Virus record (IMG/VR): IMGVR_UViG_3300027621_000003
Span: 124,001 to 188,000 of that record
Length of the DNA stretch: 64,000 nucleotides
Direction: 5' to 3' (one strand)
Shown here: piece by piece, positions 625 to 63,427 of the stretch
How positions within the stretch are numbered: position 1 is the stretch's first letter
Layout: each line of letters begins with the position of its first letter
Translations under genes and position numbers: made by a program
Notes under the pieces: model-generated
Database searches by the model: none
What the model was told of the DNA's origin: nothing
Seen by the model: only the letters and a program-made list of their open reading frames with translations

Positions 625-2418
625 TCAAAAAAGTTGTAGATTATAAATAAAATCTTTGAATTTTTCAAATGGTAATCTCATTTTTTTCAAATCTCTTGTT
701 TCCCTATTTTGTAGTGCAAACGTTACCCTATCATCTTCCATGTCCAAATCGGTGATTTTTAACATGTATCTTTTGTCACCAGGCATATCAATCCACTCAT
801 CAAAACCACCCAATTTTTTGATAAAATCATAATGGTCAATGTAATCACCTGTTATGTTTTCATTTTCATTGATAGTTTCTTCCATAGTGTCCAATAATTT
901 TTCTATGGCACTGTTGGTACTACTATATTCATAATTATTAGTCCTAAACTCATATACACTATCAGCAATACTTGGGGGGTCAATATTTTCAAGATTAATA
1001 ATTCTTCTCAATAACCCATAAATTCCAATATTAAACGTTGGATTGTATTTTTGATACGTTTTTATAAGGTCATCTAATTTAACGGTTTTTTTATAAAAAG
1101 TTCCCGTCATTGGTAATCCATATTCGGCAAACATATTTGAATAATCTTTTTCCAAATATTCTCTAATACCTTGTTCGGTATCAGCATTCATGTCATAAGT
1201 ATATTCACTGGTTATGTTATCAACGGCATTTTCAAATGCTTTTGACAAGAATTCGGAAACTTTAATTCTACAATCATCACTATCTCGTTCTTTTAATCCC
1301 AACGTACATTCATATAATTTTGGATTAATAATTTTCATATACGTTTGAAGTCTTTTCATTTGTTCGTCATCAAAGTTAGAAAACAAATATCCCTCTTTCC
1401 ATTCTTCTTCAGCATAATAACTATCAAAAATTTCACCTGTACCGTAACTAGATAATGAAATATCTAAGTACATTCTATCACCGTCACCTTCGTTCCACTC
1501 AAATAAATCAAAATAATCGCTATCTCTTCCGTTAAAATCTAAATTCAAAGTGACATTATCTTCATTATCTCTATTGTAACTGGTGATTAATGGGTCCACC
1601 CTATCAGCATTCCAGCTTGAAATAGTTCCGTCTTTAATTCTTTCAAATCCTGATTTTACTTTTCCACCACCCAATAGTTTTTCAATAACAAAATTCTCAA
1701 CCTCGGGATAAACATGGTATAGAAAATCCACATCATGTCCAGTATCCGCAGCATCATACACAGTTGGGTCACCGTCTTTAATATATAAAGCAATCTTTTG
1801 TCTTCTATTTGATTTGTCAATAAAGTAATAAAGTTTACCGTCTTTGGTGTATTTGTTAAAATAATCTGGCTGTTGTCCCGCAGTACACCAACGTGTACCT
1901 GAACCATAATAACAAGAAGCATTATGTGTGATGGCTCTGATTCCCAATACATCACCATCTTCAAATACTTTTTCAGCTTCTTTTTTCGCCGCTCGTTCTT
2001 TTTCTCTTTTGGATGAAATCATTGAAAGGGCTTGTGTCAAATATCCCAAGGTATTAATATTATACGAATTAATATCTTTGGGCGATTTCATCACAACATC
2101 TAATTTTGGAAACGCCCTTGACTCAACACCGTCCCAAAGTTCTTTAACAGTACCAATTACTTCAGGTGTAATTTTATTACTATTTTTATTAAAAAATTCT
2201 ATTTGTCTGATTAGCCCAGATATAAAGACATCAAAATCCGTAAACGGGTCAAAAAGAAATCTTTTGGTTTCAGTTTCAACAAAAGGAATGTATTTTGCAC
2301 CTAACTTTGCAGTCTCATCAAATATTTTGTCTATAAAATCAGAGTCGTCAGGAAACATTTCCTTAACCCTTTTAATAGAGTCTTCTTTCTTACCCTCTTG
2401 TAAAAATATTTTGTACAT
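625..2418 (-). CDS. phage protein with ASCYYGSGTRWCT domain (possibly PcfJ-like), paralog 1
   Basis: 597-aa ORF; motif shared with 10719..12278 and 32058..33005. Confidence 0.6.
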   Translation of the reverse strand: MYKIFLQEGKKEDSIKRVKEMFPDDSDFIDKIFDETAKLGAKYIPFVETETKRFLFDPFTDFDVFISGLIRQIEFFNKNSNKITPEVIGTVKELWDGVESRAFPKLDVVMKSPKDINSYNINTLGYLTQALSMISSKREKERAAKKEAEKVFEDGDVLGIRAITHNASCYYGSGTRWCTAGQQPDYFNKYTKDGKLYYFIDKSNRRQKIALYIKDGDPTVYDAADTGHDVDFLYHVYPEVENFVIEKLLGGGKVKSGFERIKDGTISSWNADRVDPLITSYNRDNEDNVTLNLDFNGRDSDYFDLFEWNEGDGDRMYLDISLSSYGTGEIFDSYYAEEEWKEGYLFSNFDDEQMKRLQTYMKIINPKLYECTLGLKERDSDDCRIKVSEFLSKAFENAVDNITSEYTYDMNADTEQGIREYLEKDYSNMFAEYGLPMTGTFYKKTVKLDDLIKTYQKYNPTFNIGIYGLLRRIINLENIDPPSIADSVYEFRTNNYEYSSTNSAIEKLLDTMEETINENENITGDYIDHYDFIKKLGGFDEWIDMPGDKRYMLKITDLDMEDDRVTFALQNRETRDLKKMRLPFEKFKDFIYNLQLF

Positions 2419-2422
2419 TTCT

Positions 2423-2430
2423 TATAAATA
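2423..2430 (-). promoter_or_regulatory. putative phage late-type promoter TATTTAT(A), representative of dozens
   Basis: TATTTATA 4 nt upstream of ATG 2418; recurs just upstream of most genes with (I/L)xE N-terminal tags. Confidence 0.6.
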
Positions 2431-2483
2431 GTTGTGCAGTTCAAAAAATGGTTGTATATTTGTATAAGAAAGGAAGACAAACT

Positions 2484-2903
2484 ATGAAAAACATCATCAC
2501 CACCATCGCAATGTTCATCTTGACTATCGCAGCTCAAGCACAAGTCTATCAGTTTCACTGTAAAGGTTTCTACAGGTTCGAACATACATCAGGGTTGAAT
2601 TCTATGGAAGTTTTGAATAACGACCAAGAAACCAAATTGATGGGTCAAACATCAAATATCTTCTTCATCTTTGATAGTGTTAAAAATACAATGACCAGAG
2701 TGGATTCTTTTAACAAATCAGTTATGGTAAGAACCATTGTTGACTCTCATTCTGAAAACAACTATCAATCATTTACTGTGAGTTCACCTGAAGGAACTGA
2801 CTATCTTTATATCTTTGACAAATATAACCCAACATTTTTGATGTGTGTTTGGAGAAAAGATTTGTTCATGACTCAAGGTTGGGTGTCTAAAAATCTTAAA
2901 TAA
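2484..2903 (+). CDS. hypothetical exported protein (signal peptide)
   Basis: MKNIITTIAMFILTIAAQAQ signal peptide; start moved to the ATG downstream of TATATTTG. Confidence 0.6.
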   Translation: MKNIITTIAMFILTIAAQAQVYQFHCKGFYRFEHTSGLNSMEVLNNDQETKLMGQTSNIFFIFDSVKNTMTRVDSFNKSVMVRTIVDSHSENNYQSFTVSSPEGTDYLYIFDKYNPTFLMCVWRKDLFMTQGWVSKNLK

Positions 2904-2931
2904 AAAAAGGGACCAAGTAGTCCCTTTTTTT
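2902..2931. terminator. bidirectional intrinsic terminator
   Basis: aaaaaaagggac-caagta-gtcccttttttt between convergent genes. Confidence 0.75.
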
Positions 2932-2951
2932 ATAATAATGTTAAATATTTT

Positions 2952-3557
2952 TTAAGCTAATCCCAATTGATTTTTTTGTGAAAATTCTTTAAAAAATGGT
3001 AACGCTTTTTTAACCGCATCTGGTGGCATTACCTTCATACCAGCCTTTACTTGAGCTAAGTAAGTTAAACCATCTCTTAACAATAATAAATCGTTAACCA
3101 TTGCTGATAGGGCGGCCATTGACATTATATTATCAAACGGCCTACCATCCATCATAGCTTTGTAACCACCTGCACTACCCAATTGATATCCAAGTGTTGC
3201 AATTGATTTGTTAAATGAATTAATTAAATCATTGCCCCAAATACCCTGTAAAGCCTCATAAGGTGTTCCTCCAATCAATTTTTTGTCAAAATCTTTTAAG
3301 GCTGAAGCCATAGATGTTAATGTTTTCCTATCTAAAGGTAATTTTTGATTAACAACCAACATGCTTTTATCCAACAACGGCTTTGTTTGGTCAGGTGTAG
3401 ACACTGATGTAGCATCTTGCTCCTTAGTTTCCATTCTCTTTATTTTCAAACCATTAGGTTCTCCTGACATAAAGCCAACACCCATAGATTCTTTTATTAC
3501 ACGTCTTACGATTCTTTCTAAATCAGATTCCGTTAATCTTACAATTTTTTTTGTCAT
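2952..3557 (-). CDS. hypothetical protein with MTKKIVRLTESDLERIVRRVIKE N-terminal tag
   Basis: Start reassigned to ATG 3557 (after TATTTAT); the longer track ORF overlaps the tmRNA. Confidence 0.65.
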   Translation of the reverse strand: MTKKIVRLTESDLERIVRRVIKESMGVGFMSGEPNGLKIKRMETKEQDATSVSTPDQTKPLLDKSMLVVNQKLPLDRKTLTSMASALKDFDKKLIGGTPYEALQGIWGNDLINSFNKSIATLGYQLGSAGGYKAMMDGRPFDNIMSMAALSAMVNDLLLLRDGLTYLAQVKAGMKVMPPDAVKKALPFFKEFSQKNQLGLA

Positions 3558-3635
3558 AATGAAATTATTTCTTAATAAATAGTTGTTGATATAAAAAAGT
3601 ATATTTATATTTGTTGAAATGTTCTTTGAAATTAT

Positions 3636-6611: not shown

Positions 6612-6688
6612 TGGTGGACCCTGTAGGGCTTGAACCTACGACCTACTGATTATGAGTCAGCCGCTCTGACCAACTGAGCTAAGGGTCC
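6612..6688 (-). tRNA. tRNA-Ile2 (CAU, lysidine type)
   Basis: GGACCCT...CTGACTCATAATCAG...GGGTCCACCA; Ile2-type body, encoded CCA. Confidence 0.8.
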
Positions 6689-6717
6689 ATTGTTATACAA
6701 AGATAATAAAAAAATTC

Positions 6718-7140
6718 TTAATCCCACCAATGTTCAATTTTTTGTTCAAGAATTTTAAATAATAAACGTTTAGCTTTATTGTGCTTATCTGTTACCATTT
6801 TAAGAGCTTCAGATGACCGTTTATCTAACTCATAAAACCCATCATAATATGATTCATTTTGTATTTTATCAATTAACCTAACACAAGTCATCATTAACTC
6901 AGCATCACGTTCAGAACTTTCATGAGAACCATATTTAACAAGATGTTTGGCTTGTTTTTCTAACTTGAATTTTAATACCTGAAAAACATAATGGTGGTCC
7001 CAATCCCTATCTTTCCATATTATCCAAAACCATTTATATAGGTTCTGAACTCCATACTTAATGTATTTGTGTTGGTTGGGTAGTTCCCATCTTACCCATC
7101 TGTAAAGTTTCCAATACCATTCGTTATATTCTGTGTTCAT
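6718..7140 (-). CDS. hypothetical phage protein (Trp-rich, DRDWD motif)
   Basis: 140-aa ORF inside tRNA operon 1. Confidence 0.6.
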   Translation of the reverse strand: MNTEYNEWYWKLYRWVRWELPNQHKYIKYGVQNLYKWFWIIWKDRDWDHHYVFQVLKFKLEKQAKHLVKYGSHESSERDAELMMTCVRLIDKIQNESYYDGFYELDKRSSEALKMVTDKHNKAKRLLFKILEQKIEHWWD

Positions 7141-7154
7141 AGTTATGATTTTAG

Positions 7155-7228
7155 TAGACGAGAAGGGACTTGAACCCCCAACCTTGATGATATAAGCATC
7201 CTGCTCTAACCTGTTGAGCTACCCGTCC
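7155..7228 (-). tRNA. tRNA-Ile (UAU)
   Basis: Cloverleaf; anticodon arm GATG-CTTATAT-CATC. Confidence 0.85.
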
Positions 7229-7233
7229 AAATA

Positions 7234-7419
7234 TTAGTTGAAATGAGTACAATCCCCTTGAGTATTATCCCACGGGCATATGTACATTTCTGGTTGGGTA
7301 TGTATGTAAACTCCATCAACACCAAAGTTGTCATTTTCACCATACAACCCAAGTGACTGACTTAATTCTGTCAATTCGGTTAAAAAATCTTCCTGCGTCA
7401 TTTGAGTCTTGGGGTCCAT
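7234..7419 (-). CDS. hypothetical protein
   Basis: 61-aa ORF between tRNAs. Confidence 0.45.
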   Translation of the reverse strand: MDPKTQMTQEDFLTELTELSQSLGLYGENDNFGVDGVYIHTQPEMYICPWDNTQGDCTHFN

Positions 7420-7432
7420 GATTATTGTGTTT

Positions 7433-7509
7433 TGGAGCCTGAAGACGGACTCGAACCGCCAACCCCCTGATTACAAGTCAGGTGCTCTACCAATTAAAGC
7501 TATTCAGGC
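7433..7509 (-). tRNA. tRNA-Thr (UGU)
   Basis: CCTGA-CTTGTAA-TCAGG; CCA encoded. Confidence 0.9.
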
Positions 7510-7528
7510 ATTTATGTTTTAATATATA

Positions 7529-7816
7529 TTACTTTCCTTGTTTTTTGTAAACATAAGTGATGGTATCACCAATGTTGTACTTCCTCAAAGAAGTAAACTC
7601 ACTGCTGTCTGACATGAAATACTTGTACTTCCTGTCAAGTTCAATTGTGCTGTGAGGTGGCAATTGAACCATTGAATCAATAACGAACTTTTCAACTACA
7701 TCACCTTTTTCAATCAAAGGTTTCTGTTTACAAGCTCCTAACATAGTGGCAAGAATAATAGATAAAATAATCCATAAGGAAAAATAAAGTCGGGGGTCTT
7801 TTAATATGTTTTTCAT
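7529..7816 (-). CDS. putative membrane/lipoprotein
   Basis: TM followed by LGAC; start placed after TACCTTTG promoter. Confidence 0.55.
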   Translation of the reverse strand: MKNILKDPRLYFSLWIILSIILATMLGACKQKPLIEKGDVVEKFVIDSMVQLPPHSTIELDRKYKYFMSDSSEFTSLRKYNIGDTITYVYKKQGK

Positions 7817-7817
7817 G

Positions 7818-8369
7818 TTACAAAGGTAATATATTTTTTTCAAAGTTTTTTACATAATTGTCAACTATGTGTTGAATTTCATTTTGATATCTACTATGAA
7901 CATACTGATGATGTGTTGGACATAATGGTACCAAGTTTTTTGGTTCGTTATTTTGGTGATTATTGTCATAATGATGGATAGTCACAATTTTATTTTCACT
8001 ACAAATAATACATTCTTTTTTGTGATAATTAAAACCAATTCTTCTATAACCGTTACGTTCTTGACTATCACCAAAATTTCCCCAATTTGGGTTATTTTCA
8101 CCACTTCTAAAAAAGGTGTTTGAACAAGAATAAGAACATGTTGTTCTTTCTTCTTTCCCTCCAACTTTTGTTTCAAATTGAATATCACAAACAGGACACA
8201 ATTTAATAACTGATTGGTATTTTATTTCTCGACTTCTTAAATGCGAAACGTCAATTTTATTTTCAACAATGAAATTTTCAAATTTTTTTCGAGTTTTTCC
8301 ATTGTCAAAACCATAGAGTTTTTTAATAGCTTCAGCCCTTGTCTTAGAATTTTTAATTATTTCTACCAT
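7818..8369 (-). CDS. HNH homing endonuclease
   Basis: CPVC/CSYSC zinc motifs and CIIC...IHHYD.NH.NN..NL..LCPTHH. Confidence 0.8.
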   Translation of the reverse strand: MVEIIKNSKTRAEAIKKLYGFDNGKTRKKFENFIVENKIDVSHLRSREIKYQSVIKLCPVCDIQFETKVGGKEERTTCSYSCSNTFFRSGENNPNWGNFGDSQERNGYRRIGFNYHKKECIICSENKIVTIHHYDNNHQNNEPKNLVPLCPTHHQYVHSRYQNEIQHIVDNYVKNFEKNILPL

Positions 8370-8431
8370 ATATAATAAATATATTGATTGTCGTTAAAAT
8401 TAGATTTGGTCAAATATTTTTTTAACGATTG

Positions 8432-8507
8432 TAGCGTAGACTGGATTCGAACCAGCGTGCCTCTGCTCCCAAAGCAGATGAGATAAACCTGACTCCTCTA
8501 CTACGCT
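8432..8507 (-). tRNA. tRNA-Pro (UGG)
   Basis: TCTGC-TTTGGGA-GCAGA. Confidence 0.85.
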
Positions 8508-8516
8508 ATTTGTTTG

Positions 8517-8586
8517 TGGACACTGTGGGAATCGAACCCATACGTTCTGATTGCAAATCAAACGGTCTGCCGTTGACATCAGGCCC
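8517..8586 (-). tRNA. tRNA-Ala (UGC), atypical
   Basis: TTTGA-TTTGCAA-TCAGA with G3:U70; irregular acceptor and D arms. Confidence 0.65.
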
Positions 8587-8597
8587 TTTTATTTTTG

Positions 8598-8669
8598 CGG
8601 TCCCACCGGGAATCGAACCCGGCACTTTGCCGTGACAGGGCAATATTATAGCCGATTAACTACAGGACC
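8598..8669 (-). tRNA. tRNA-Asp (GUC)
   Basis: TTGCC-CTGTCAC-GGCAA. Confidence 0.9.
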
Positions 8670-8737
8670 GTAAGTTAGTAAACCCGGGCCCAACAAGCCG
8701 TGATAAACACGGAAGGGCCCTTTTTAAGATTTACTTT

Positions 8738-8813
8738 TGGAGCGAGAGACCAGGTTCGAACTGGCGACCCTCAGTTTGGTAAACTGATGCTCTACCGACT
8801 GAGCTACTCTCGC
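8738..8813 (-). tRNA. tRNA-Gly (ACC)
   Basis: GCGAGAG acceptor, U73, CCA; anticodon arm TCAGT-TTACCAA-ACTGA. Confidence 0.85.
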
Positions 8814-8818
8814 TTTTG

Positions 8819-8890
8819 AGCGAGTGGGGAGAATCGAACTCCCATATCCAGCTTGGAAGGCTGGAGTAATAGCCTTTATACTACACTCGC
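8819..8890 (-). tRNA. tRNA-Gly (UCC)
   Basis: CCAGC-CTTCCAA-GCTGG. Confidence 0.9.
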
Positions 8891-8982
8891 TTTTTTCGAG
8901 TCAGAGTAGTCACGGCCACCTCTTATCCTTCTGACTCTTGATGTAAAAGTGGCCAATGTGGCACGACCCAAGTTACATCCAT

Positions 8983-9056
8983 TGGTTGCGGACCCGAGAC
9001 TCGAACTCGGAACTATGGGTTATGAGCCCATTATGTTACCATTACACCAACCCGCG
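8983..9056 (-). tRNA. initiator tRNA-fMet (CAU)
   Basis: C1:A72 mismatch, three G-C pairs in anticodon stem, CCA. Confidence 0.9.
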
Positions 9057-9065
9057 ATTTATTTG

Positions 9066-9137
9066 TACTCGGTAGGGGAGTCGAACCCCTCTTTCCAGGA
9101 TGAAAACCTGGCATCCTAACCGATAGATGAACCGAGC
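9066..9137 (-). tRNA. tRNA-Glu (UUC)
   Basis: CCAGG-TTTTCAT-CCTGG. Confidence 0.9.
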
Positions 9138-9150
9138 AATTATTTTTTTC

Positions 9151-9171
9151 TTACCAATACGTCAAAGAACT
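9151..9171 (-). promoter_or_regulatory. boxA-like antitermination element
   Basis: AGTTCTTTGACGTATTGGTAA, identical to 16088..16108, directly upstream of the first tRNA. Confidence 0.7.
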
Positions 9172-9242
9172 TTTTTGTTCTGTTGTCTTATTCAACAACA
9201 ATACAAAGTTAATACATTTTTTTAATACTACCAAACAAACAC

Positions 9243-9274
9243 AAAAAAAACCCATCCTTTCGAGATGGGTTTTT
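9243..9274 (-). terminator. attenuator terminator of tRNA operon 1
   Basis: AAAAACCCATC-TCGAAAG-GATGGGTTTTTTTT. Confidence 0.8.
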
Positions 9275-9295
9275 GTAAGATATTTTTTTACAATA

Positions 9296-9364
9296 TTATC
9301 CCATCTCCACTTTGGAAGTATCAGCCTCTGTTGCTGGTGTGCCGAATATGAATATGGTTTTCAT
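9296..9364 (-). CDS. leader peptide of tRNA operon 1 (22 aa, MKTIFIFGTPATEADTSKVEMG)
   Basis: Hand-translated; last codons GAGATGGG are complementary to the terminator 5' arm. Confidence 0.7.
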   Translation of the reverse strand: MKTIFIFGTPATEADTSKVEMG

Positions 9365-9421
9365 TGAATGTATTATTATTTGATTTCTTATTAAATATAA
9401 TAAACTTTTAAAAAGTGTCAA

Positions 9422-10690
9422 TTAAAACGCCAAAGAATTTACATAACTTACCGATTTTTGTACAGACTTTTCAATTGTTTTAATAATTGAGTCCAAATTT
9501 AACTCGGCAACATTACCAATTGAGATTCTAAACCATCCTTTGTTACTCTTTGAACCAAAATATTCAAACGGAACAATTCCCAACCCACAGGTATTAATTA
9601 AGAACGAAATATACTCTTCTGTGGATGAAAATGAATGAACATAACCCAAGTAAACCGAAATATAAATTCCACCATCAGGTTTTTGGTAATCAACATTATG
9701 ACCTTTGTTTTTCAATTCTTCCAACTTGTCACAGATTTTATCTGATATAAATTCATACGATTTTGTTACATAGTTTATGTGAGAAATGTAATCTTCATAA
9801 TCTACTCTGATGTACGCATCCAATGCTCGTTGTTCAGGTTTTGGTGCCCATGCTCCAATGTGAGACAAAACTTCGGTTATCTTTCCAATAATATCTTTTG
9901 GACCAAACAACCAACCAACACGAACACCAGTTGCGTTTAATGATTTTGAAATACCATCAGCACAAATCAAATAATCTCTGATTTCAGGACATAAAGTTAA
10001 TGGGTGGATAAACAAACCTTCTTTGGTGATGTCAGAATAAATCTGGTCAAAGAACAAATACAATGGTCTTGAACCTACTTGTGTTGACCTGATTTTATTT
10101 TCTCTCACAATCAACTCACAAATACCTTTCAGAACTTCGGGGTCAATTACACGACCTGTTGGATTTTGTGGCGAACAAATGCAAACCAATGATGTTTTAT
10201 CACTTATTCTACCGTCAACATCTTCAACGGTTGGAAAAAATGAATTTTCAGGTGTACATTCAATTTCTTCTTTTTGTGCATTATGTAAAAAACAATAGTG
10301 GTTATTATTCCAAGATGGTACAGGATAAATCACCTCTTCATTCGGATTTACCGTGGCTTTATAAACCGTATAAATCAATGGACGAACTCCACCACCAATT
10401 AAGATTTCTTCAGGTGAATAATCAACATTGAACTGATGTTTAATGTGTTTGGAAACAGATTCCCTTAATTCAAGTTCTCCTTGTGAGTTTGGATAGTTGG
10501 TTAAATCCCACTCGTAAGCATCTTGAATGTGTTTTCTTAATTTTGAGGGTATTGGCCATAGTTTGGAATTAAAGTCACCTATGGTTAGGTTAGATACTGG
10601 TTTTGTTTTAGCAATTTCTTTGATTTGTTGTGAGATTTTAATAATTTCAGAGCCAACAATATTGTTCCCTACATTTGATAATTTTTCCAT
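9422..10690 (-). CDS. class I/II PLP-dependent (aspartate-type) aminotransferase
   Basis: SPQNPTG, DQIY, GISKSLNATGVRVGW (PLP lysine) and WFRIS motifs. Confidence 0.9.
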   Translation of the reverse strand: MEKLSNVGNNIVGSEIIKISQQIKEIAKTKPVSNLTIGDFNSKLWPIPSKLRKHIQDAYEWDLTNYPNSQGELELRESVSKHIKHQFNVDYSPEEILIGGGVRPLIYTVYKATVNPNEEVIYPVPSWNNNHYCFLHNAQKEEIECTPENSFFPTVEDVDGRISDKTSLVCICSPQNPTGRVIDPEVLKGICELIVRENKIRSTQVGSRPLYLFFDQIYSDITKEGLFIHPLTLCPEIRDYLICADGISKSLNATGVRVGWLFGPKDIIGKITEVLSHIGAWAPKPEQRALDAYIRVDYEDYISHINYVTKSYEFISDKICDKLEELKNKGHNVDYQKPDGGIYISVYLGYVHSFSSTEEYISFLINTCGLGIVPFEYFGSKSNKGWFRISIGNVAELNLDSIIKTIEKSVQKSVSYVNSLAF

Positions 10691-10718
10691 TATCAAAAGT
10701 ATAAGACACTAATAAGAA

Positions 10719-12278: not shown

Positions 12279-12307
12279 ATATATAAATACTCACAATTAT
12301 GTATTTG

Positions 12308-12381
12308 TAGCGAGGGAGGGAATTGAACCCCCCACCTCAGGGTTATGAATCCTGCGCTCTAACCGACTGAGCTACCTCGCC
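12308..12381 (-). tRNA. elongator tRNA-Met (CAU)
   Basis: GGCGAGG...CAGGATTCATAACCCTG. Confidence 0.85.
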
Positions 12382-12385
12382 ATGA

Positions 12386-13470: not shown

Positions 13471-13491
13471 ATCAATAAATATACTGATGTG

Positions 13492-52274: not shown

Positions 52275-52598
52275 TTAAAACTTTTGAATGGTTTTTTGTG
52301 AGAATGAAAAACCCCAACCTCCACCATATCTATTGTATCCTAAATTGAAGGTTTTATCTGTCTTACTTATAATACTTTGTTTTAACTCAAAAAGGTTTGG
52401 TTTAGTCAATTCATCATCCAAATTATTAACCAAAACATTAATAATAATTTCTTCACCTCTATCTTTTCCATTAATAGGACCTGAACCATAATAAACACTT
52501 CTGTTTGTAAACCACACATCATCAACCCTATCAAAATTTGATAAGATATACTTTTTAATAATGTTTTCTTTTTGGCTTTCTGTAATCAGGTATTTCAT
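52275..52598 (-). CDS. hypothetical protein (MKYLITESQ tag)
   Basis: 107-aa ORF. Confidence 0.6.
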   Translation of the reverse strand: MKYLITESQKENIIKKYILSNFDRVDDVWFTNRSVYYGSGPINGKDRGEEIIINVLVNNLDDELTKPNLFELKQSIISKTDKTFNLGYNRYGGGWGFSFSQKTIQKF

Positions 52599-52622
52599 TA
52601 GTTATAAATATAAGAAAATAAA

Positions 52623-54274: not shown

Positions 54275-54529
54275 ATGGTAAATGCTATTGAAAATGTACT
54301 AAACTTGGTTGTAAAACCAAAATATCCATTAGTGGATAAGATAGTGGTACGTGAAGACAATGATTTTGACTATACAACCTATATGATTTACATTATATCA
54401 GATAAGTACGAAGCGCTTAATTATGAAAATAACATTGTTAAAGATATAACAAATGTTTGTAAAAGTATGGGATTAAAAAGAAGAGATATTGAAAATATTA
54501 CTTTTGCAACAAAAGGCATTGATTATTAA
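54275..54529 (+). CDS. hypothetical protein
   Basis: 84-aa ORF. Confidence 0.55.
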   Translation: MVNAIENVLNLVVKPKYPLVDKIVVREDNDFDYTTYMIYIISDKYEALNYENNIVKDITNVCKSMGLKRRDIENITFATKGIDY

Positions 54530-55605
54530 GAAAATGGGTTTTTAATAGGTGAAGAATAGTGAGTCACTTCTCTTCCTGTTTTGTCTATAGAATAATTAGA
54601 ATTTGGGAAAATAATAAATGAATCAAGTGCGTTGTTTGTATAAACAATGTAATCCAAATTTTTCTTATACTTGTATGAATTTTTCATACCAAAAGTATAA
54701 ACAACAATACCATTATCGGTTTTAAAAGTTTTATTGGATGGTTTTACTTGGAACGTTTTTCCTTTTATTGAGAAATCAATTGAATCTACTCTATCTTTTA
54801 TTGAGCCCAAACAATATCTAACAACATCTTTATCCTCAAGACCAAATTTTTGTTTAACAGTTCTCATAAAAGTATCTTCTGTTTTAGAACCACTTTCAAA
54901 AGACCTTATATTTGTTTTAATGGCTCGTTTAAGAATCTCACTATTTTGACCAAAAAGTTTTTCACCATTTTCATTTATCCAAGATTTAAAATCATCAATA
55001 GATTCATTTCGGTTTTCTTTTTTATACTCCTCTAATAATATTTTAATTACACCAGGATTTGTATCAAAAAAGTTAAGGATTGACCATCGTTCACCCTCAA
55101 CTGCTGGAAATATATCAATTACACCATCCAAAGTTTCACAATCAGGTTGATTGATACGACCCCAATTATTTGGATATACTTCTTTTAAAGTATCCAATAT
55201 TGTTTTAGGTACTCCTGATTCGTTTTTCTTCAAATATGTAATATCAAAATTTTCTGTAGATGGTTGTTTTGGTTGGTCAATTAATTCCAACAAACTATCC
55301 ATTTCTTTTGGGTAAATTTGTTTAAAGACAGAACCTTCAACATAGGCATTTCTTTTCAAACGATTATAATTAAAATCGTCAATATCAAATTTATAAACAT
55401 CACCATCATTTGAAATCAAAGATATATTTTCACTATCGGAACCAAACCTTCCTGATTTAGGTGAAAGGTTATTAAAGTATATCCTGTTCATCGGATACTT
55501 AATCCACGGCTTAATATCACGAAAATTAAACTCAACATTAGCATCTCCGTCTGATGAATTTTCAGTTATGATAGTTTTTAATATCTTTAAAAATTTAAAT
55601 CCCAT
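54526..55605 (-). CDS. hypothetical protein, possible C-terminal PD-(D/E)xK nuclease fold
   Basis: G...E...D...IDF...TFQVK pattern; IITE tag. Confidence 0.45.
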   Translation of the reverse strand: MGFKFLKILKTIITENSSDGDANVEFNFRDIKPWIKYPMNRIYFNNLSPKSGRFGSDSENISLISNDGDVYKFDIDDFNYNRLKRNAYVEGSVFKQIYPKEMDSLLELIDQPKQPSTENFDITYLKKNESGVPKTILDTLKEVYPNNWGRINQPDCETLDGVIDIFPAVEGERWSILNFFDTNPGVIKILLEEYKKENRNESIDDFKSWINENGEKLFGQNSEILKRAIKTNIRSFESGSKTEDTFMRTVKQKFGLEDKDVVRYCLGSIKDRVDSIDFSIKGKTFQVKPSNKTFKTDNGIVVYTFGMKNSYKYKKNLDYIVYTNNALDSFIIFPNSNYSIDKTGREVTHYSSPIKNPFS

Positions 55606-55689
55606 AATTCTCTACTGTTAATAAATACACTTATACACATATTAAACACAATTGTTTTAACTTAAATGTTAATATGTTATCTTTGACAT

Positions 55690-57515: not shown

Positions 57516-58211
57516 TTATCTCAGCCTTCGGGAACTGCCGTGGGTCGTATTATAGATTGTCCCCGGAGGTGGAGGTGTTGGAGCTTGAGGTCTTGTTTGA
57601 GTTGTTGTTTGTTGTTGAAGTTTTTTAGATATTTCCTGTTGCGATTTAAGAATCATATCTCTTAATGGTCTCATTATTTCAACCCATTCATTTTCTGCGT
57701 CAAAATCACCATCCAATGCTGTATATAAATCTTCACCATAACTATCTTTATATGATTTAACTACACCACAAAATTCAGCAATACTTCTTGTAGCTTTAAG
57801 TGACCTATAAACATTATCTTCATTAGTACCAGCCCCTGATATGGCCCTATAAATATTATCAGCAATTAGGTTTGTATTTGAAGTTACCGGAAATTTATTA
57901 CCACAATTGTTAATAATTTTTTGTACTTTTTTACTTGCGGCATCACTACCATTCATGATTGATAGGACTAAAGCTCCAATTGCACCGGCAGTACCACCAG
58001 CCGCAGCACCAACTAATGTCCCAACAAGAGGTACTACAGAACCAGCCGCAGCTCCAGCTCCAGCTCCAGCTAATGCTCCAGCTCCAGCTCCAGCTAATGC
58101 TCCAGCACCAACGGTTGTTTGTTCTTTTAGATAATGTTTATTGGTTGCGGATGTATGCATTTCCAATATTCTATTTTTTTCTTCTTCAGATATATTTAAT
58201 AAATTTTTCAT
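57516..58211 (-). CDS. glycine-zipper plus annexin-like repeat protein
   Basis: GAGA-rich TM; AISGAGTNEDNVY...YKDSYGEDLYTALDGD annexin signature. Confidence 0.6.
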   Translation of the reverse strand: MKNLLNISEEEKNRILEMHTSATNKHYLKEQTTVGAGALAGAGAGALAGAGAGAAAGSVVPLVGTLVGAAAGGTAGAIGALVLSIMNGSDAASKKVQKIINNCGNKFPVTSNTNLIADNIYRAISGAGTNEDNVYRSLKATRSIAEFCGVVKSYKDSYGEDLYTALDGDFDAENEWVEIMRPLRDMILKSQQEISKKLQQQTTTQTRPQAPTPPPPGTIYNTTHGSSRRLR

Positions 58212-58258
58212 AATAATGTTTAATAATAAATACAACGACAGTTAAAAAAGTTTTTTAT

Positions 58259-58549
58259 TTAATTTTGGTTCTCTTCCCAAAATTCACGAATCTTATCACC
58301 AAGAAGATGTATTAATATTTTCTCGTATGTTGGAATCTCTTCGTAATCCGTGTGAGGAAAAATATCATACATCATTATGTCAATCACATAATTAACAAAA
58401 TCTTCCACATCATTGTATTCATCGGCTTCCAAACTCATACCGTTATTCATCATAACATCATACATGAGTTCCTGTAGACCATCCAACCTTCTTTTCAAAG
58501 GTGTAGGGATAATCATATCAAGTTGTGATTCACTAATTATGTATCTCAT
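58259..58549 (-). CDS. hypothetical protein (MRYIISESQ tag; LxRR family)
   Basis: Paralogous to 58551..58844 and 62306..62578. Confidence 0.6.
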   Translation of the reverse strand: MRYIISESQLDMIIPTPLKRRLDGLQELMYDVMMNNGMSLEADEYNDVEDFVNYVIDIMMYDIFPHTDYEEIPTYEKILIHLLGDKIREFWEENQN

Positions 58550-58550: not shown

Positions 58551-58844
58551 TTATTGGCAATTTCTGTTATTATATTTTTCAGTTAAATCAACATAAACCA
58601 TATCAAAGATAACATTATACAATAAATCAACATAAAAATTATTATTTAAATAATATTCAGGATGAAGACCATCCGTAGTGTAATGTATCACCATGTTGAT
58701 ATACCTTTCACTGTCATCATAATTACAAGGATTAATTTCTCTAAGTGACTGATTATATTCATTCATGAACAACTCTTGTCTTCTTAAGAGCCATTGTTTC
58801 ATTTTTAATTTATTATGTTGCGATTCCGTTACAATAATCTTCAT
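58551..58844 (-). CDS. hypothetical protein (MKIIVTESQ tag; LRR...PC.Y family)
   Basis: 97-aa ORF. Confidence 0.6.
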   Translation of the reverse strand: MKIIVTESQHNKLKMKQWLLRRQELFMNEYNQSLREINPCNYDDSERYINMVIHYTTDGLHPEYYLNNNFYVDLLYNVIFDMVYVDLTEKYNNRNCQ

Positions 58845-59027
58845 TACTTATAAATACAAAGATAAATAAAAAACCCCCAACATAAGATGGGGGTTTAAAA
58901 ATTACTTGTTAGATTCTTTGGCCTTATTCAGAACCTCGTTGTTCTGTTTAATTCTTAAGGCAAATTTCTTACTCATTTTTCTACATCTTGAATACGTACA
59001 TTTTGAACTTTTCATAATGAATAAATA

Positions 59028-59993
59028 CTATATTTTTGATATTTGTTTTTGTAAGTTCATTATGGGTTCAATTACTTTTGTATCTACAAATTGTTCTTGC
59101 CAAGATTTTATGTGTCCTTCACCTATAAAATAAATTCCACAAACTAAATTGTTTTTAATGTATTCTCTTCTTCTTTTTGTTGCGGTTTCCGCCATGTTAG
59201 TCAATAAATTTTTACCATCTTGGTAACCAAAATTGTCTTTCTTTGAATCAAAATTTCCCCACATAATATCAAACCCACTTTGAATAAATTTTCTTATATT
59301 TTCAGGTGTTGGCTCACTTTGTAGTAATGACATTATATTTTGTGTGTTGGGTGTATTTTTTATTTGTTCAATAAACCATTTTTTATCATTATCATTAAAA
59401 GATAAACTACCATCCCAAAATAACTTTGACCCATCACCAAAAATAATTAAGTCATAAATTGAATTTATTTTCTGACCATTATTTTTTAATATGGAAAGTT
59501 GGTCTAATAAAATTTTATCTTGGTTGATTCCATCTAACTTTGCTTTAGTTTTTTCATCTACCGCATTCCCATTAGAAAAAAAAGTATACATAAAATACTT
59601 TTTGTCGGGTTGGTCATTATTTATCTTTGGTTCGTAACTTCCCTTCTCCTCAATACCATTTAACTTTAATTCTTCTTTGAAAAATCTCTCGATGTTCTTC
59701 AGGTCGTCTCCGCCTACACCCTCATAATAATACCCACAGTTTGTTGCAACTTCTTTTATATCATTAATAATTGAAGGGTCTATATCATCAAGTTCTAAGT
59801 ATACAGGGTTTTTTTCATCAAAATGTGTGACACCAATTATAAAACTATTAAGTTTTTTTCCTTCTTGTCCTTCTTGATAAGGTTGTTTAATCACAACTCC
59901 GTGATTAGTTCCTTTTACTGCAGGTTCATTTTCATCTTCTATAAGAAGACCCATCATTTCTTTAATCCTATGTATATTTTCTTGTAAGTTCAT
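59028..59993 (-). CDS. hypothetical protein (MNLQENIHRIKEMMG tag)
   Basis: 321 aa; GVTH, YEG and R...GEGH pattern reminiscent of TraB/GumN. Confidence 0.55.
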   Translation of the reverse strand: MNLQENIHRIKEMMGLLIEDENEPAVKGTNHGVVIKQPYQEGQEGKKLNSFIIGVTHFDEKNPVYLELDDIDPSIINDIKEVATNCGYYYEGVGGDDLKNIERFFKEELKLNGIEEKGSYEPKINNDQPDKKYFMYTFFSNGNAVDEKTKAKLDGINQDKILLDQLSILKNNGQKINSIYDLIIFGDGSKLFWDGSLSFNDNDKKWFIEQIKNTPNTQNIMSLLQSEPTPENIRKFIQSGFDIMWGNFDSKKDNFGYQDGKNLLTNMAETATKRRREYIKNNLVCGIYFIGEGHIKSWQEQFVDTKVIEPIMNLQKQISKI

Positions 59994-60499
59994 ATTAAAT
60001 TTCTGTGGTAATCTATTAATTCTTTATATGTACGCGGAAATAAATCTTTAAAGTCATCAAAACCATCTGTAACATCAACCCAATTATTTTTATTACCGTA
60101 TATATGTTTAATTATTTTTTTATCATCTTTATTTTGTAAATCAAAAACACTTCTATTAAAATTCGTTTTAATGTTATAATCCTGGTAATTATTATACATC
60201 CACGGGTCAATAATGTATCTATCGTTCATTATCGCAAAATGATGTCCTTCATCACCTTCTTCATCTGAAAAGTATACTGTATCAGGATTTTTATCTATAC
60301 TAAAACCATAAATTTTAACATCATCCCCCTCTAACATTTTTACAGCAGATGCAACATATGAACAAATAAACGAACTTCCATCTTTTTCTATCGCATTTTC
60401 AATCTCTTTAACAAATTTGGGGTCATCATAGATATATGGATTTTTACTACCTATCCCCATCATTTCTTTAATCCTATATATGTTCTCTTGTAAGTTCAT
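59990..60499 (-). CDS. hypothetical protein (MNLQENIYRIKEMMG tag), transglutaminase-like C-H-D
   Basis: ICSYVA...GHHFA...YIIDPW. Confidence 0.55.
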   Translation of the reverse strand: MNLQENIYRIKEMMGIGSKNPYIYDDPKFVKEIENAIEKDGSSFICSYVASAVKMLEGDDVKIYGFSIDKNPDTVYFSDEEGDEGHHFAIMNDRYIIDPWMYNNYQDYNIKTNFNRSVFDLQNKDDKKIIKHIYGNKNNWVDVTDGFDDFKDLFPRTYKELIDYHRNLI

Positions 60500-60924
60500 T
60501 GTTCAAAATAAATATCACCACCAACTTTATTTATCATTTGTTTTATTTGAAGCCATTTATTGGACATTGGAGTGTTAGTTAAAAACAAATCACCGCCAAC
60601 GTAAGTTAAATTTTCAAGGGATTCAACTGGAGTTCCATCCAAATCCAAATTACCACCAACTGAAGTTAGACTACCAAGTGATTTGAGTGGTGTATCATAG
60701 GCGTATATATCACCTTCTACTGAAACAAGGTTTCCAAGAGATTCAACTTTTAGACCAACCAAATTTAAGTTTCCACCTAAAGAATATGGTGGGTTTCCTT
60801 TTGATTCCAAAAATTTCTGCAATCCATCCCAGTCACCAAATAATTTTACACCAGGAATTTGAAGAACCTTTTGTTCCTCCTCAAATAATCTTTTGTGTTG
60901 AGATTCAGATATTATAATCTTCAT
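60496..60924 (-). CDS. leucine-rich-repeat-like protein, tandem paralog A
   Basis: SLGNL..VGG.L repeats; MKIIISESQHKRLFEE tag. Confidence 0.7.
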   Translation of the reverse strand: MKIIISESQHKRLFEEEQKVLQIPGVKLFGDWDGLQKFLESKGNPPYSLGGNLNLVGLKVESLGNLVSVEGDIYAYDTPLKSLGSLTSVGGNLDLDGTPVESLENLTYVGGDLFLTNTPMSNKWLQIKQMINKVGGDIYFEQ

Positions 60925-60927: not shown

Positions 60928-61380
60928 TTAATATAAAATGTTTCCTTGAACATAAACCTTATGGCTTATCGTATCTTCCATCCTTTGCTTTGAACGTGGG
61001 GATGCATCTTTAGGAAAGAGTGGAGTACCTTTCAAAACCAAACTACCACCAACAAAAGATAAGTTCCCAAGGGATTCAATTTGAGTATTACTTATATCCA
61101 TTAAACCACCAACTGAAGTTAGACTACCAAGAGATTTAAGTGGAGTATCATAAGCATATAAATCATGTTGGACTGAAACAAGGTTTCCAAGAGATTCAAC
61201 TTCCAAACCAACCAAATTTAAGTTTCCACCCAAAGAATATAATGGATTTCCTTTTGATTCCAAAAACCTTTGCAGATTATCCCAGTCATCACCAAATATT
61301 CTAATATCAGGAATGTGAAGAACCTTTTGTTCTTCCTCAAATAATCGTCTATGCTGAGATTCAGATATAATAATCTTCAT
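60928..61380 (-). CDS. leucine-rich-repeat-like protein, tandem paralog B
   Basis: Highly similar to 60496..60924. Confidence 0.7.
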   Translation of the reverse strand: MKIIISESQHRRLFEEEQKVLHIPDIRIFGDDWDNLQRFLESKGNPLYSLGGNLNLVGLEVESLGNLVSVQHDLYAYDTPLKSLGSLTSVGGLMDISNTQIESLGNLSFVGGSLVLKGTPLFPKDASPRSKQRMEDTISHKVYVQGNILY

Positions 61381-61536
61381 TACAAATAAATATAACCAAA
61401 CCCACCTTTTTTAAGATGGATATAATTAGGGGGACAATATAACACCCGAAGGGTTCGGGAGGTCAGAGAACCGTCCGAAGGACGGGTGGACGGGGTCAGA
61501 AAAAGGGGGTGGGGGGATTTTATTTGGTTTCCGGCA

Positions 61537-62061
61537 TCATTCATATATTCCAACAAACAAACAATGATAAGCGGTAATACCATAATTAAAATAAATTGTG
61601 TTATTTAACATATTCTCAACGCAACCCTCAATTTGTCCATATAAAGTTTCAAGGTCTTCGTAGTCATTCAAATCAACAGAGCCATGATATTCATTATTAA
61701 ATACAGGTGAATCATTTTTGATGGAAAAATTTACATCATAACTATACCATTCCTCTACATCACCAGAACCATCAACAAGAACGATTTTACGAGGAACAAA
61801 AACAATACTATCAAGTCTTAAAGTAAACTCATCACCATCACATTCATGGTAGTTTTCAATCAAAGTCCTAACTTGTTCTTCAACTTCATCAAAGTTAAAA
61901 TTACGATATTCAAAAAGATATTTGGCAGTTTCATATTCAGATAAAGAAAAGTATTTTCCCATCTCAATAGATGGACCATTTTTATCCCAATACTTAAACA
62001 AGTAATCTTTTACAGAATTTTTTGATTCTTCCCTTAAGACCCTTTTGATTAGTTCCTTCAT
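61537..62061 (-). CDS. hypothetical protein (MKELIKRVLREE tag)
   Basis: 174-aa ORF. Confidence 0.6.
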   Translation of the reverse strand: MKELIKRVLREESKNSVKDYLFKYWDKNGPSIEMGKYFSLSEYETAKYLFEYRNFNFDEVEEQVRTLIENYHECDGDEFTLRLDSIVFVPRKIVLVDGSGDVEEWYSYDVNFSIKNDSPVFNNEYHGSVDLNDYEDLETLYGQIEGCVENMLNNTIYFNYGITAYHCLFVGIYE

Positions 62062-62074
62062 ATCAATAAATACC

Positions 62075-62248
62075 TTACATTACAAAACTATCTTCCAATA
62101 ATTTAGTTACCCGTTTAATATGTCCCAAATGAACACCCCTATCTCCACCCATACGTTCCCTCATTTTCTTTTCAACATACATCTTCTCAATTTTGTCTGT
62201 ATATACACGATACTCCGACATCATCTGAATTACGGTCTTTGTTTCCAT
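62075..62248 (-). CDS. small hypothetical protein (57 aa)
   Basis: Hand-translated METKTVIQMMSEY...; TATCTTTG promoter. Confidence 0.45.
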   Translation of the reverse strand: METKTVIQMMSEYRVYTDKIEKMYVEKKMRERMGGDRGVHLGHIKRVTKLLEDSFVM

Positions 62249-62305
62249 ATTACAAAGATACTAAATTAATGGGAAATAAAAAACCCCTCGGTAATGGAGG
62301 GGTTG

Positions 62306-62578
62306 TTAACAATCTTCTTGGGAATTAATATAATATTGAATGATATAATCTTTTAGGTTTTGTTTTACAAAATCAATAACCTCTTCAGGTTGAATCCTTT
62401 TAATACCCTCTAAATCTAAAAAGGTTTCCAATTCATAAATTACCCCAATATAAAAATAAGATTCATTTGAATAATCACAGGGGTACATATTATCCAATAC
62501 AACATCCAATACTTTTTTAATATAATAAAACCTTCTTCTTAATGACGTGTTCTGTTCCTCAGTGATAATGATTTTCAT
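62306..62578 (-). CDS. hypothetical protein (MKIIITEEQ tag)
   Basis: LRRR...PCDY family. Confidence 0.6.
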   Translation of the reverse strand: MKIIITEEQNTSLRRRFYYIKKVLDVVLDNMYPCDYSNESYFYIGVIYELETFLDLEGIKRIQPEEVIDFVKQNLKDYIIQYYINSQEDC

Positions 62579-62610
62579 ATTCCATAAATATACGGGAGGG
62601 TAAAATAGGA

Positions 62611-62671
62611 AAATTTTCCCAAAAATTCTATTTCACATATAGGGTATCTTCATAAGAAGGGGGGTCATGTT
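62611..62671. repeat. about 60-bp intergenic direct repeat (copy 2 at 63483..63544)
   Basis: aaaaattctatttcacatataggg..ta.cttcataagaaggggggtcatgtt. Confidence 0.8.
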
Positions 62672-62728
62672 TATAGGAAATAAAAAACCCCTCTGTTGGG
62701 AGGGGTTCCAAGTATTTTTTTAAATGTA

Positions 62729-63427
62729 TTACCCACAAGGTACTACACTATCTTTAACCGTACTGGCAAACCAGTTAATTTGTAATGTATCATCTTTACG
62801 TTGAATTATTTTATCAAAAGGAATTTTTACACAAACGTTATAAAGAAACTTTTGTTGAGGATATTTTTCGGTGCCTGCTTCATAAGAGTCCACATCATAA
62901 TACTCTATTGATTCTGCTTTGATAATAATACCATCTTTGTCTTTACGGATAACTTTAGCACCCTCGATGTCTACGAACAACTCTCTTTTATCTCCCATTG
63001 TACTTGAATAAGTATATGACCTACCAATAATCATTTGTCTATTAGTGATAAGACGAATTACCGTACCAGGATTGTACATTGAATTTTGTTTCTGAGACTC
63101 ATCTTCTTGTTGATTAACCAATTTCATTATCAAATTATAATCAATATGATATTCATTCTGTAACCATTGGTCCAAGTTTTGACCATCTTGAACACCAAAT
63201 GCTTTTTTAACCCCTTCCCAATCCTGCTTGTTATTAATTCTGTTTACTATAGTTTGTTGAATGTTTTTTGCGGCGTCGCTTGTAACATTTAACCCCGTCA
63301 TCAATTCTTTGAAATAATCAGCAATTTCTTTGTAGTCTTGTGGGGTAAGTTTTTTGGCTTGTTCACTAATTACTCTTCTAACAATTCTTGTTAAATCTGA
63401 TTCTGTTAATCTTATAATTTTTTTCAT
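62729..63427 (-). CDS. hypothetical protein (MKKIIRLTESDLTRIVRRVISE tag)
   Basis: Tag shared with 2952..3557 and 46758..47561. Confidence 0.65.
   Translation of the reverse strand: MKKIIRLTESDLTRIVRRVISEQAKKLTPQDYKEIADYFKELMTGLNVTSDAAKNIQQTIVNRINNKQDWEGVKKAFGVQDGQNLDQWLQNEYHIDYNLIMKLVNQQEDESQKQNSMYNPGTVIRLITNRQMIIGRSYTYSSTMGDKRELFVDIEGAKVIRKDKDGIIIKAESIEYYDVDSYEAGTEKYPQQKFLYNVCVKIPFDKIIQRKDDTLQINWFASTVKDSVVPCG

Follow-up and report, generated by a model that had tools for sequence, protein, structure and literature searches.

The window analysed here is a 64,000-nucleotide stretch of viral DNA that corresponds to bases 124001-188000 of a single 294,914-bp contig (32% G+C; IMG/VR record IMGVR_UViG_3300027621_000003), and its sequence is contained nearly verbatim in freshwater metagenomes. 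It carries 26 tagged genes (~41 genome-wide), which encode unrelated proteins that begin with one of five or six families of N-terminal leader. The leaders are 7-30 residues long, and many contain two sites of the form (I/L/V)-x-E (hereafter hxE). Gene calling was crude, taking the first ATG and a minimum of 45 amino acids, and gave a genome-wide set of 359 open reading frames (ORFs); the start position was corrected for two tagged genes, and paralogous genes are non-independent data points. Coordinates of tagged genes are window positions with the strand in brackets, TATTTAT is an upstream motif considered below, and an arrow (↓) marks the boundary after an hxE.

The F1 leader, MKKI(I/V)(R/K)L(T/S)ESDL..I(V/I)(R/K)(R/K)V(I/L)xE, is found in its archetypal 22-residue form (MKKIIRLTESDLTRIVRRVISE↓Q) on a 232-residue protein at 62729-63427 (-; TATTTAT 63445-63451). 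A 201-residue protein at 2952-3557 (-; MTKKIVRLTESDLERIVRRVIKE↓S; TATTTAT 3575-3581), whose true start is 3557 rather than the longer-ORF start at 3701, matches it in the leader only, and a third F1 leader (MKKIIKLSESDLEKIIKKVLME↓Q) begins a 267-residue protein within an operon at 46758-47561 (-). The F2 leader, ..(I/L)(T/S)EEEKNRIL.MH......LxE, is carried by proteins of 148 residues (41728-42174, +; MKNLLNISEEEKNRILEMH...YLNE↓Q; TATTTAT 41707-41713), 266 residues (49390-50190, -; MKKFIITEEEKNRILGMH...SLNE↓Q; within an operon), 144 residues (51043-51477, -; an operon head, TATTTAT 51483-51489) and 231 residues (57516-58211, -; TATTTAT 58226-58232). In the last of these a Gly/Ala-rich linker is followed by an annexin-like repeat (Pfam Annexin, E=7e-7), which is unusual in a phage protein. 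BLAST aligned residues 1-35 of the proteins that begin at 41728 and 58211 with 94% identity, beyond which the two are unrelated. The weakest member of the whole set, a 281-residue protein at 50193-51038 (-), has a degenerate F2-like leader (MKHILNDLSNEEKNSIRKQH) without an hxE in its first 34 residues.

The F3 leader, MK(I/Y)(I/L)(I/V)(T/S)E(S/E)Q, is carried by proteins of 107 residues at 52275-52598 (-; MKYLITE↓SQ; TATTTAT 52604-52610), 96 at 58259-58549 (-; MRYIISE↓SQL; within an operon), 97 at 58551-58844 (-; MKIIVTE↓SQ; TATTTAT 58850-58856, overlapping a second motif, TAnnTTTG), 142 at 60496-60924 (-; MKIIISE↓SQHKRLFE↓E), 150 at 60928-61380 (-; a full-length paralogue of the preceding protein, TATTTAT 61386-61392) and 90 at 62306-62578 (-; MKIIITE↓EQ; TATTTAT 62584-62590). 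An F3-type leader, MDVLITE↓SQRTLILTE↓S, begins a 204-residue protein at 29204-29818 (+; TATTTAT 29193-29199). The F4 leader, MNLQENI.RIKEMMGL.xE, is found on a 321-residue protein within an operon at 59028-59993 (-; MNLQENIHRIKEMMGLLIE↓D), which has orthologues in IMG/VR, and on a 169-residue protein at 59990-60499 (-; MNLQENIYRIKEMMG; TATTTAT 60508-60514); by BLAST these two match over residues 1-16 only. An F4-type leader, MFDLITE↓VKKIKTMMGLIKE↓D, precedes a 366-residue polyphosphate kinase 2 (PPK2) at 35086-36186 (-; TATTTAT 36191-36197), and an F4-like one, MDKRLLEE..KELMNLNE↓Q, a 259-residue protein at 42317-43096 (+; TATTTAT 42305-42311). The second gene in the operon headed by 35086-36186 encodes a 195-residue protein with an F6-type leader (34499-35086, -; MKNFIRYILKE↓N), and the F6 leader proper, MK(D/E)LI(R/K).(I/V)L(R/K)E, occurs on a 174-residue protein at 61537-62061 (-; MKELIKRVLRE↓E; TATTTAT 62066-62072).

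A looser group, M..(F/L).(Q/F/L)EG(K/R)(K/E)ED, is carried by a six-member paralogous family of large proteins (PHROG 17056/28193), represented in the window by a 597-residue protein at 625-2418 (-; MYKIFLQE↓GKKED...VKE↓, with hxE ends at residues 8 and 20; TATTTAT 2424-2430) and a 519-residue paralogue at 10719-12278 (-; MILFE↓GRKED; TATTTAT 12283-12289). Three further tagged proteins complete the set, of 321 residues (24814-25779, -; MKQQIISE↓GKE..., with cargo homologous to that of 57516-58211; TATTTAT 25792-25798), 106 residues (45677-45997, -; MGRLILTE↓DD; TATTTAT 46004-46010) and 359 residues (54526-55605, -; MGFKFLKILKTIITE↓N; TATTTAT 55621-55627). The N-termini singled out in a preliminary description of this DNA were present at all 14 positions that it gave (3557, 47561, 63427, 50190, 51477, 41728, 58211, 52598, 58844, 60924, 61380, 62578, 59993 and 60499).

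Across the 359 ORFs, [IL]xE ended at residues 5-9 in 55 cases, compared with ~20.6 expected from its internal frequency, and the controls [IL]xD, [IL]xK, [IL]xN and others were not enriched at the same residues. When N-terminal 22-mers were compared, 72 pairs reached an ungapped BLOSUM score of at least 35, versus 10 pairs for residues 51-72 of the same proteins. Single-linkage clustering on N-termini alone gathered 41 proteins into three groups, with 30, 7 and 4 members; a few of these proteins are probably chance inclusions. The cargo behind a shared tag had been described as unrelated, and 98 of the 103 leader-similar pairs indeed lacked similarity after residue 40, with only five showing any (E<=0.01). 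The F1 core lay at the N-terminus in six of its seven occurrences in the genome, and the helical hydrophobic moments of the F1, F4 and F6 leaders are high, being reached by 37-77 of 2000 shuffles.

IMG/VR was searched with a degenerate DNA pattern for MKKI(I/V)RLTESDL, which was present on at least 116 contigs in at least 137 instances; among the matches listed, TATTTAT was located upstream of 85 of 137. The boundary of the leader was analysed with 102 instances bearing distinct cargo among the matches listed, in which residues 13-22 had been left free by the search. These residues read x-R-[IL]-[VI]-[KR]-[RK]-[VI]-[IVL]-x-E. Position 20 was isoleucine, valine or leucine in 101 of the 102 and position 21 was free (2.7 bits), while position 22 was glutamate in 91 and aspartate in none, though aspartate is common just downstream. 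Instances without glutamate at position 22 represent a longer variant ending ..IL.E a few residues on. From residue 24 onward the entropy is ~4 bits, equivalent to no conservation, and the jump occurs within one residue. The boundary between leader and cargo is exactly (I/L/V)-x-Glu, and the F1 leader of 62729-63427 sits on at least 102 different cargos in IMG/VR. The other families behave similarly: F4 terminates in MMGL(L/I/V)xE or MMGLNE, F2 in YLxE and F6 in IL(K/R)E, with divergent cargo beyond, and F3 has ITE at residues 5-7 and mostly a second (L/I)xE at residues 13-17. A position-free search for RIKxMMG[LF] gave 92 distinct instances; in 62 the closest in-frame methionine upstream was 9-13 residues away, and most of the others were short or out-of-frame chance matches. 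That the leaders end at hxE motifs and are followed by unrelated cargo, as the preliminary description had it, is borne out by both the N-terminal enrichment of [IL]xE and the boundary in the F1 alignment.

Within leader families the upstream DNA is unrelated save for TATTTAT, and the leader codons differ synonymously. Over the 102 F1 instances the invariant Leu7 is encoded by TTA, CTT, CTA and TTG, Ser10 by TCN and AGT, and Arg18 by AGA, CGA, CGT, AGG and CGG. Because codons vary while the amino acids stay fixed, selection acts on the leader peptide and not on the DNA. CheckV estimates suggest that all leader-bearing contigs are pieces of ~300-kb phages; Peptidase_S77 was detected in 23 of 49 leader-bearing records and in all six of those at least 90% complete. 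Among 185,579 prokaryote genomes the F1 DNA pattern had one match, on the 3.3-kb contig CANKZE010000111.1 of a Bacteroidetes metagenome-assembled genome, which is probably a mis-binned phage fragment and possibly a pointer to the host. Since many viral contigs carry F1 and only this one prokaryote-genome match was found, the F1 leader is phage-specific and lineage-wide. A tblastn search with the 26-residue leader gave no match among cultured phages.

Pfam and PHROG profiles matched little in the 30 tagged proteins scanned, and only a few cargos could be assigned to a family. One is the PPK2 domain at residues 130-348 of the 35086-36186 product (E=9.5e-66), which ~100 unassigned residues separate from the F4-type leader. 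Weak LRR and DHH-like matches were obtained on tagged cargo outside the window, and in related contigs P-loop kinase-like sequences, recognised from Walker-A-type motifs only, stand behind F4 leaders. Atlas searches with two cargos returned viral hypothetical clusters only, or nothing. The DHH-like protein (genome 226063-227466) starts MKRLIKE↓SG.. here, and its orthologue in a related contig has a longer F3 leader, MKIIITESQFRMMIKE↓SG..; because the same cargo stands behind different leaders, leaders are exchanged.

Two promoter-like motifs are found upstream of genes in this genome. TATTTAT starts at -13 to -11 from the ATG of 44 genes and TAnnTTTG, the Bacteroidetes -7 element, at -12 in 22 genes. 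Copies of TATTTAT within 30 nucleotides upstream of a start numbered 80/220 in the sense and 15/220 in the antisense orientation, and A+T-matched control words gave 8-13 copies in the same position. The tagged set for the promoter comparison was defined from N-termini alone, blind to promoters. The association of tag and TATTTAT put forward earlier proved strong, with the motif lying within 30 nucleotides upstream of 26 of 41 tagged and 43 of 256 untagged genes (odds ratio 8.6, p=2e-9), or 37 of 41 versus 113 of 256 when counted by operon head. The companion claim that genes with TAnnTTTG generally lack the tag also stood: none of the 41 tagged genes carries this motif, compared with 30 of the 256 untagged (p=0.02). 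TATTTAT also heads the operon running through the protease, scaffold and capsid protein genes and an operon starting with a baseplate-wedge protein, and for this reason it would most simply be a late promoter.

Metatranscriptome contigs, which could include DNA, cover parts of tagged genes in four runs and give no transcript starts. In one contig, from run X18, 25 other letters take the place of 218 nucleotides at window 62077-62296. The replaced stretch spans a 57-residue gene with a TAnnTTTG promoter (62075-62248), positioned between two tagged late genes, and this replacement points to a strain variant without the small early-type gene. Both motifs end 4-6 nucleotides before the ATG (for example TATTTAT at 2424-2430, 12283-12289 and 62066-62072), so that dozens of mRNAs, of both the early and the late class, may be leaderless or almost leaderless. 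Such near-leaderless mRNAs could be linked to the phage's own S21-like gene, described below. In related contigs a second mode of TATTTAT was observed at -21 to -24, followed by an A-rich leader.

Profile scans located a T4-type head module outside the window, at genome 105-120 kb. It encodes a Gp23 major capsid protein (PF07068, E=4.6e-73), a gp20 portal (E=3.3e-72), a large terminase and, beside the scaffold and capsid genes, a gp21-family prohead protease (Peptidase_S77, PF03420, E=1.3e-23; phrog_207, E=1.4e-43). The S80 profile matched this protease with only E=0.0056, which fails the S80 cut-off. Residues 57-60 of the capsid protein are L-I-N-E followed by alanine; the site is kept in five relatives and reads V-S-E↓A in Flavobacterium phage immuto, a cultured phage of 160 kb (host Flavobacterium sp. 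LMO8). It is found shortly before the segment that aligns to residue 28 of mature T4 gp23* (456 residues; precursor 521). Because the capsid protein keeps I-N-E↓A where T4 gp23 is cut, the prohead protease probably retains T4 specificity. Together with immuto, the deposited phages nearest to this one in their capsid protein are an uncultured 484-kb phage and Rhodothermus phage RM378, and a megablast of 22 kb gave no match among cultured phages. The S21-like gene, a 62-residue ORF at genome 110309-110497 (+) that resembles ribosomal protein S21, lies on the opposite strand within the terminase-portal-protease-capsid module and was identified by eye and context.

In the sister clade represented by phage immuto, a leader motif is shared with the scaffold protein. 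Immuto itself has only about four leader-like N-termini, such as MKKQILSEQF(K/R)RMQ(F/K)LAGIITE↓S, and this leader protein matches immuto phages only. A position-free IMG/VR scan for R-M-Q-x-L-A-G-I-I retrieved 118 distinct instances in just two contexts. In 38 the motif lies at the extreme N-terminus of variable proteins, and in all 38 I-x-E follows directly downstream. In the other 80 it lies at the extreme C-terminus of an ORF, with zero or one residue before the stop, and in 77 of these an (I/V/L)xE stands 3-6 residues before the arginine. The tail-bearing ORF is downstream of the S77 protease and ends 60-130 nucleotides before an immuto-like Gp23 gene, which is the position of the scaffold (gp22); the immuto scaffold ends ..IISE↓VSEQVSRWQKLAGIIK. 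When the tail 15-mer was compared with the six-frame translation of immuto, the top two non-self matches were two N-terminal leaders (scores 47 and 40; next 30). Predicted cleavage sites after I-T-E fall in the immuto proteins encoded at 25061-25456 and 111675-112139. By sequence, a peptide of ~15 residues serves both as the C-terminal tail of the scaffold and as the N-terminal leader of cargo, set off from the rest of the protein in each case by a protease-type site. In several well-studied phages the scaffold binds the shell through its C-terminus. Since the same peptide forms tail and leader with hxE beside both, the simplest reading would be that leaders copy the docking peptide of the scaffold. 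Immuto also has two adjacent genes just upstream of the terminase (117631-118632 and 118632-118931) whose products share the N-terminus M..NF(N/D)L(R/K)(S/K)FL(T/V)ENKLT.N...LKE.

In the genome of the window, a 537-residue ORF between the protease and capsid genes aligns with the C-terminal part of the immuto scaffold (E=6e-8). This putative scaffold ends ..NLIE↓SKTYENPQFLRMKDIMQKIQK, and the tail is kept in four relatives. Its best match among the 359 N-termini is the F6 leader MKDLIRKIL(K/R)E, a score reached by 14 of 2000 ungapped shuffles, and there is a short resemblance between R-M-K-D-I/L-M in the tail and R-I-K-E-M-M in the F4 core. C-terminal copies of the F1, F2, F3 and F6 leaders were also searched for and were not significant. 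A 488-residue scaffold-like protein outside the window (genome 245877-247343), with TATTTAT upstream, combines three features of the targeting type. Its N-terminus is F1-like; another F1-like segment lies internally at about residues 277-294, where V-K-E precedes the segment and V-N-E closes it; and L-I-N-E stands ahead of an F4-like core situated five residues from the C-terminus. This protein may be an additional component of the core or scaffold. The C-terminus of the protease, considered as a third carrier of the leader motif, was too weak a candidate and was dropped.

Taken together, these results favour a model, which we consider probable, in which each leader is a detachable propeptide for capsid targeting, removed by the prohead protease and possibly a copy of the scaffold tail. 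From these observations we infer the binding, cleavage, packaging and ejection of the tagged proteins. Late in infection the TATTTAT promoter, which would also drive the head and baseplate operons, would transcribe ~40 genes whose products begin with a 7-30-residue, mostly amphipathic leader. The leader would dock each protein inside the assembling prohead, on the scaffold core or the inner face of the capsid protein, probably through the same contact as the C-terminal tail of the scaffold, which has the same motif in the sister clade. The gp21-type protease would then cut after the leader-terminal (I/L/V)-x-Glu, and after the one preceding the scaffold tail, freeing the cargo in the head. DNA would be packaged around the cargo, and some of it at least would exit with the DNA at the next infection. 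The portable capsid-targeting propeptide proposed in the preliminary description is thus well supported in silico, having held up in every test available, and its further suggestion of injected effectors would follow by analogy. More tentatively, as a possibility rather than an expectation, we propose a general cargo-loading system in huge T4-like phages of Bacteroidetes, in which a transplantable peptide that copies the shell-binding tail of the scaffold directs any late protein into the capsid, the protease frees scaffold and cargo alike, and about one in eight genes encodes a capsid passenger, forming a rapidly shuffled arsenal delivered with the DNA.

Several points weigh against the propeptide model. 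The (I/L/V)xE motif is short and common in helices. Forty different passengers are far above the load of T4, and PPK2 and P-loop kinases are not obvious capsid passengers. The leader-bearing contigs all belong to one phage lineage, and because they are kin, finding S77 alongside the leader adds no independent support. For the genome that holds the window, the link between scaffold tail and leaders is only suggestive: a gapped alignment of the scaffold tail to the N-termini was not significant (42-48 of 300 shuffles reach the score), a hidden Markov model built from 54 sister-clade scaffold tails found nothing below E=1 among the proteins of this genome, and the putative scaffold is not enriched in hxE sites.

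Targeting and cleavage could also serve a different end, if the cargo mainly made up a core or 'inner body' of the kind known from phiKZ and SPN3US, which would organise the 295-kb DNA from within the head, and did not consist of injected effectors. Processing of many internal head proteins is seen in giant phages whose proteases are related to gp21 (PMC9026906, PMC5694885, PMC10052503), the six paralogous tagged proteins of 300-600 residues would suit such a core, and so would the 488-residue scaffold-like protein with its internal F1-like and C-terminal F4-like motifs. Many cargos, however, are small, hypervariable between related phages and enzyme-like (PPK2, DHH-like, P-loop kinases, LRR, annexin repeats), and because of this an accessory or effector role fits better than a conserved structure; we consider an inner body unlikely. 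The amphipathic character of the F1, F4 and F6 leaders, evident in their hydrophobic moments, would equally suit a general docking or oligomerisation helix that recruits late proteins to a replication or assembly compartment, to the membrane or to each other, with the terminal glutamate being structural. Such a helix gives no account of why conservation stops exactly at hxE, with 91 glutamates and no aspartate in 102 instances though aspartate is common downstream, why the same motif is the C-terminal tail of the scaffold with hxE separating tail from body, or why it is restricted to extreme termini, and we judge this explanation to be quite improbable.

If the shared 5' ends were nucleic-acid signals, they might be translation enhancers for leaderless or Shine-Dalgarno-less mRNAs read by ribosomes containing the phage bS21, or recombination cassettes. 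The spacing of 4-6 nucleotides between promoter motif and ATG, the A-rich first codons and the near identity in DNA of 41728 and 57516 are in keeping with this, and T-even internal-protein loci are known to recombine at conserved capsid-targeting sequences (PMC3012670, citing Repoila 1994). Yet the amino acids are invariant over 22 codons despite wide synonymous variation that extends to TCN/AGT serine and AGA/CGN arginine, and scaffold genes, too, carry the motif, at their 3' end. Recombination may move leaders but leaves selection on the peptide unexplained, and there is very little chance that a nucleic-acid signal accounts for the pattern. Nor do we give much credence to a single fast-evolving family whose members keep a common N-terminal domain but have diverged C-terminally, in which the tag would not be portable, a highly improbable account. 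Several sub-families are indeed full-length paralogues (60496 with 60928, the 625 family, and 24814 with 57516), but 98 of 103 leader-similar pairs have no similarity after residue 40, the cargos include unrelated Pfam domains, entropy rises within one residue, and the orthologous DHH-like cargo stands behind different leaders.

The window contains two further features of note. There are 28 tRNA genes at 6612-31990, 24 of them on the minus strand within 6612-16079; the ARAGORN call at 14281-14359 has a two-base anticodon and is marked '???'. Three co-oriented genes at 40007-41684 have N-termini that look IscU/SufS/IscA-like (putative iron-sulfur cluster assembly proteins).

Should the leaders prove to be loading tags, a simple rule applied to sequence would pick out the proteins that hundreds of uncultured huge phages deliver by capsid. 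This set would comprise host take-over and anti-defence proteins otherwise invisible in metagenomes, and part of the 'dark' gene content of jumbo phages would be explained. The match between tail and leader suggests how capsid targeting might work and might have arisen, and phage immuto, being cultured, offers a testable peptide. Phage engineering could gain a second, orthogonal tag for packaging proteins. Host immune sensors triggered by prohead proteases (PMC12991175) widen interest in the grammar of protease cleavage.

The closest known system is that of T4, in which gp21 cuts after L/I-X-E and aspartate at the glutamate position blocks processing (PMC9026906) but not targeting, and in which internal proteins bear a 10-19-residue N-terminal capsid-targeting sequence (CTS) that loads even foreign proteins (PMC9026906, PMC3012670). 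Like the CTS of IPI, IPII, IPIII and Alt, the leaders described here are short N-terminal propeptide-like sequences ending in (L/I)-x-Glu on unrelated proteins; as in T4, a gp21-family protease, a Gp23 capsid protein and a gp20 portal are encoded and the cargo is hypervariable between related phages. Unlike T4, with a handful of such genes and one type of 10-19 residues, this phage has ~40 tagged genes per genome and at least five leader families of 7-30 residues, accepts valine at P3, has two hxE sites in many leaders, and is associated with a Bacteroidetes host and a TATTTAT promoter. The leader motif is also shared with the C-terminal tail of the scaffold, for which no equivalent was found in the T4 literature examined. 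The leaders form families of their own and are set beside the T4 CTS by description.

The proposed system also resembles encapsulin cargo-loading peptides and the C-terminal helices of P22-type scaffolds, in which a terminal, transplantable peptide docks inside an HK97-fold shell. To our knowledge, encapsulin peptides are usually C-terminal, are not removed by a protease and have no sequence relation to the leaders. In phiKZ, 201phi2-1 and SPN3US, many internal head proteins are cleaved after glutamate by a gp21-related protease (PMC9026906, PMC10052503). The proteases of these phages are of the S80 type and recognise S/A/G-x-E, whereas the one here is S77 (E=1e-23 vs 0.0056 for S80) with I/L/V at P3, and no portable conserved leader on unrelated proteins, as is present here, has been described for phiKZ-type phages. 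In its ~300-kb genome, the S21-like ORF (identified by eye) on the opposite strand in the head module, a hallmark of that group, and its occurrence in freshwater metagenomes, this phage resembles the bS21-encoding huge phages of freshwater Bacteroidetes (Chen et al. 2022, PMC9723584). A term search of that paper found neither 'promoter' nor 'motif', and N-terminal leaders are not described there; among the papers searched that mention capsid-targeting sequences, no title or abstract concerned these phages or an identity of tail and leader. Set against these systems, what appears to be new is the scale of ~40 genes per genome, the use of several leader families, their spread in uncultured huge Bacteroidetes phages and the identity between scaffold tail and leader.

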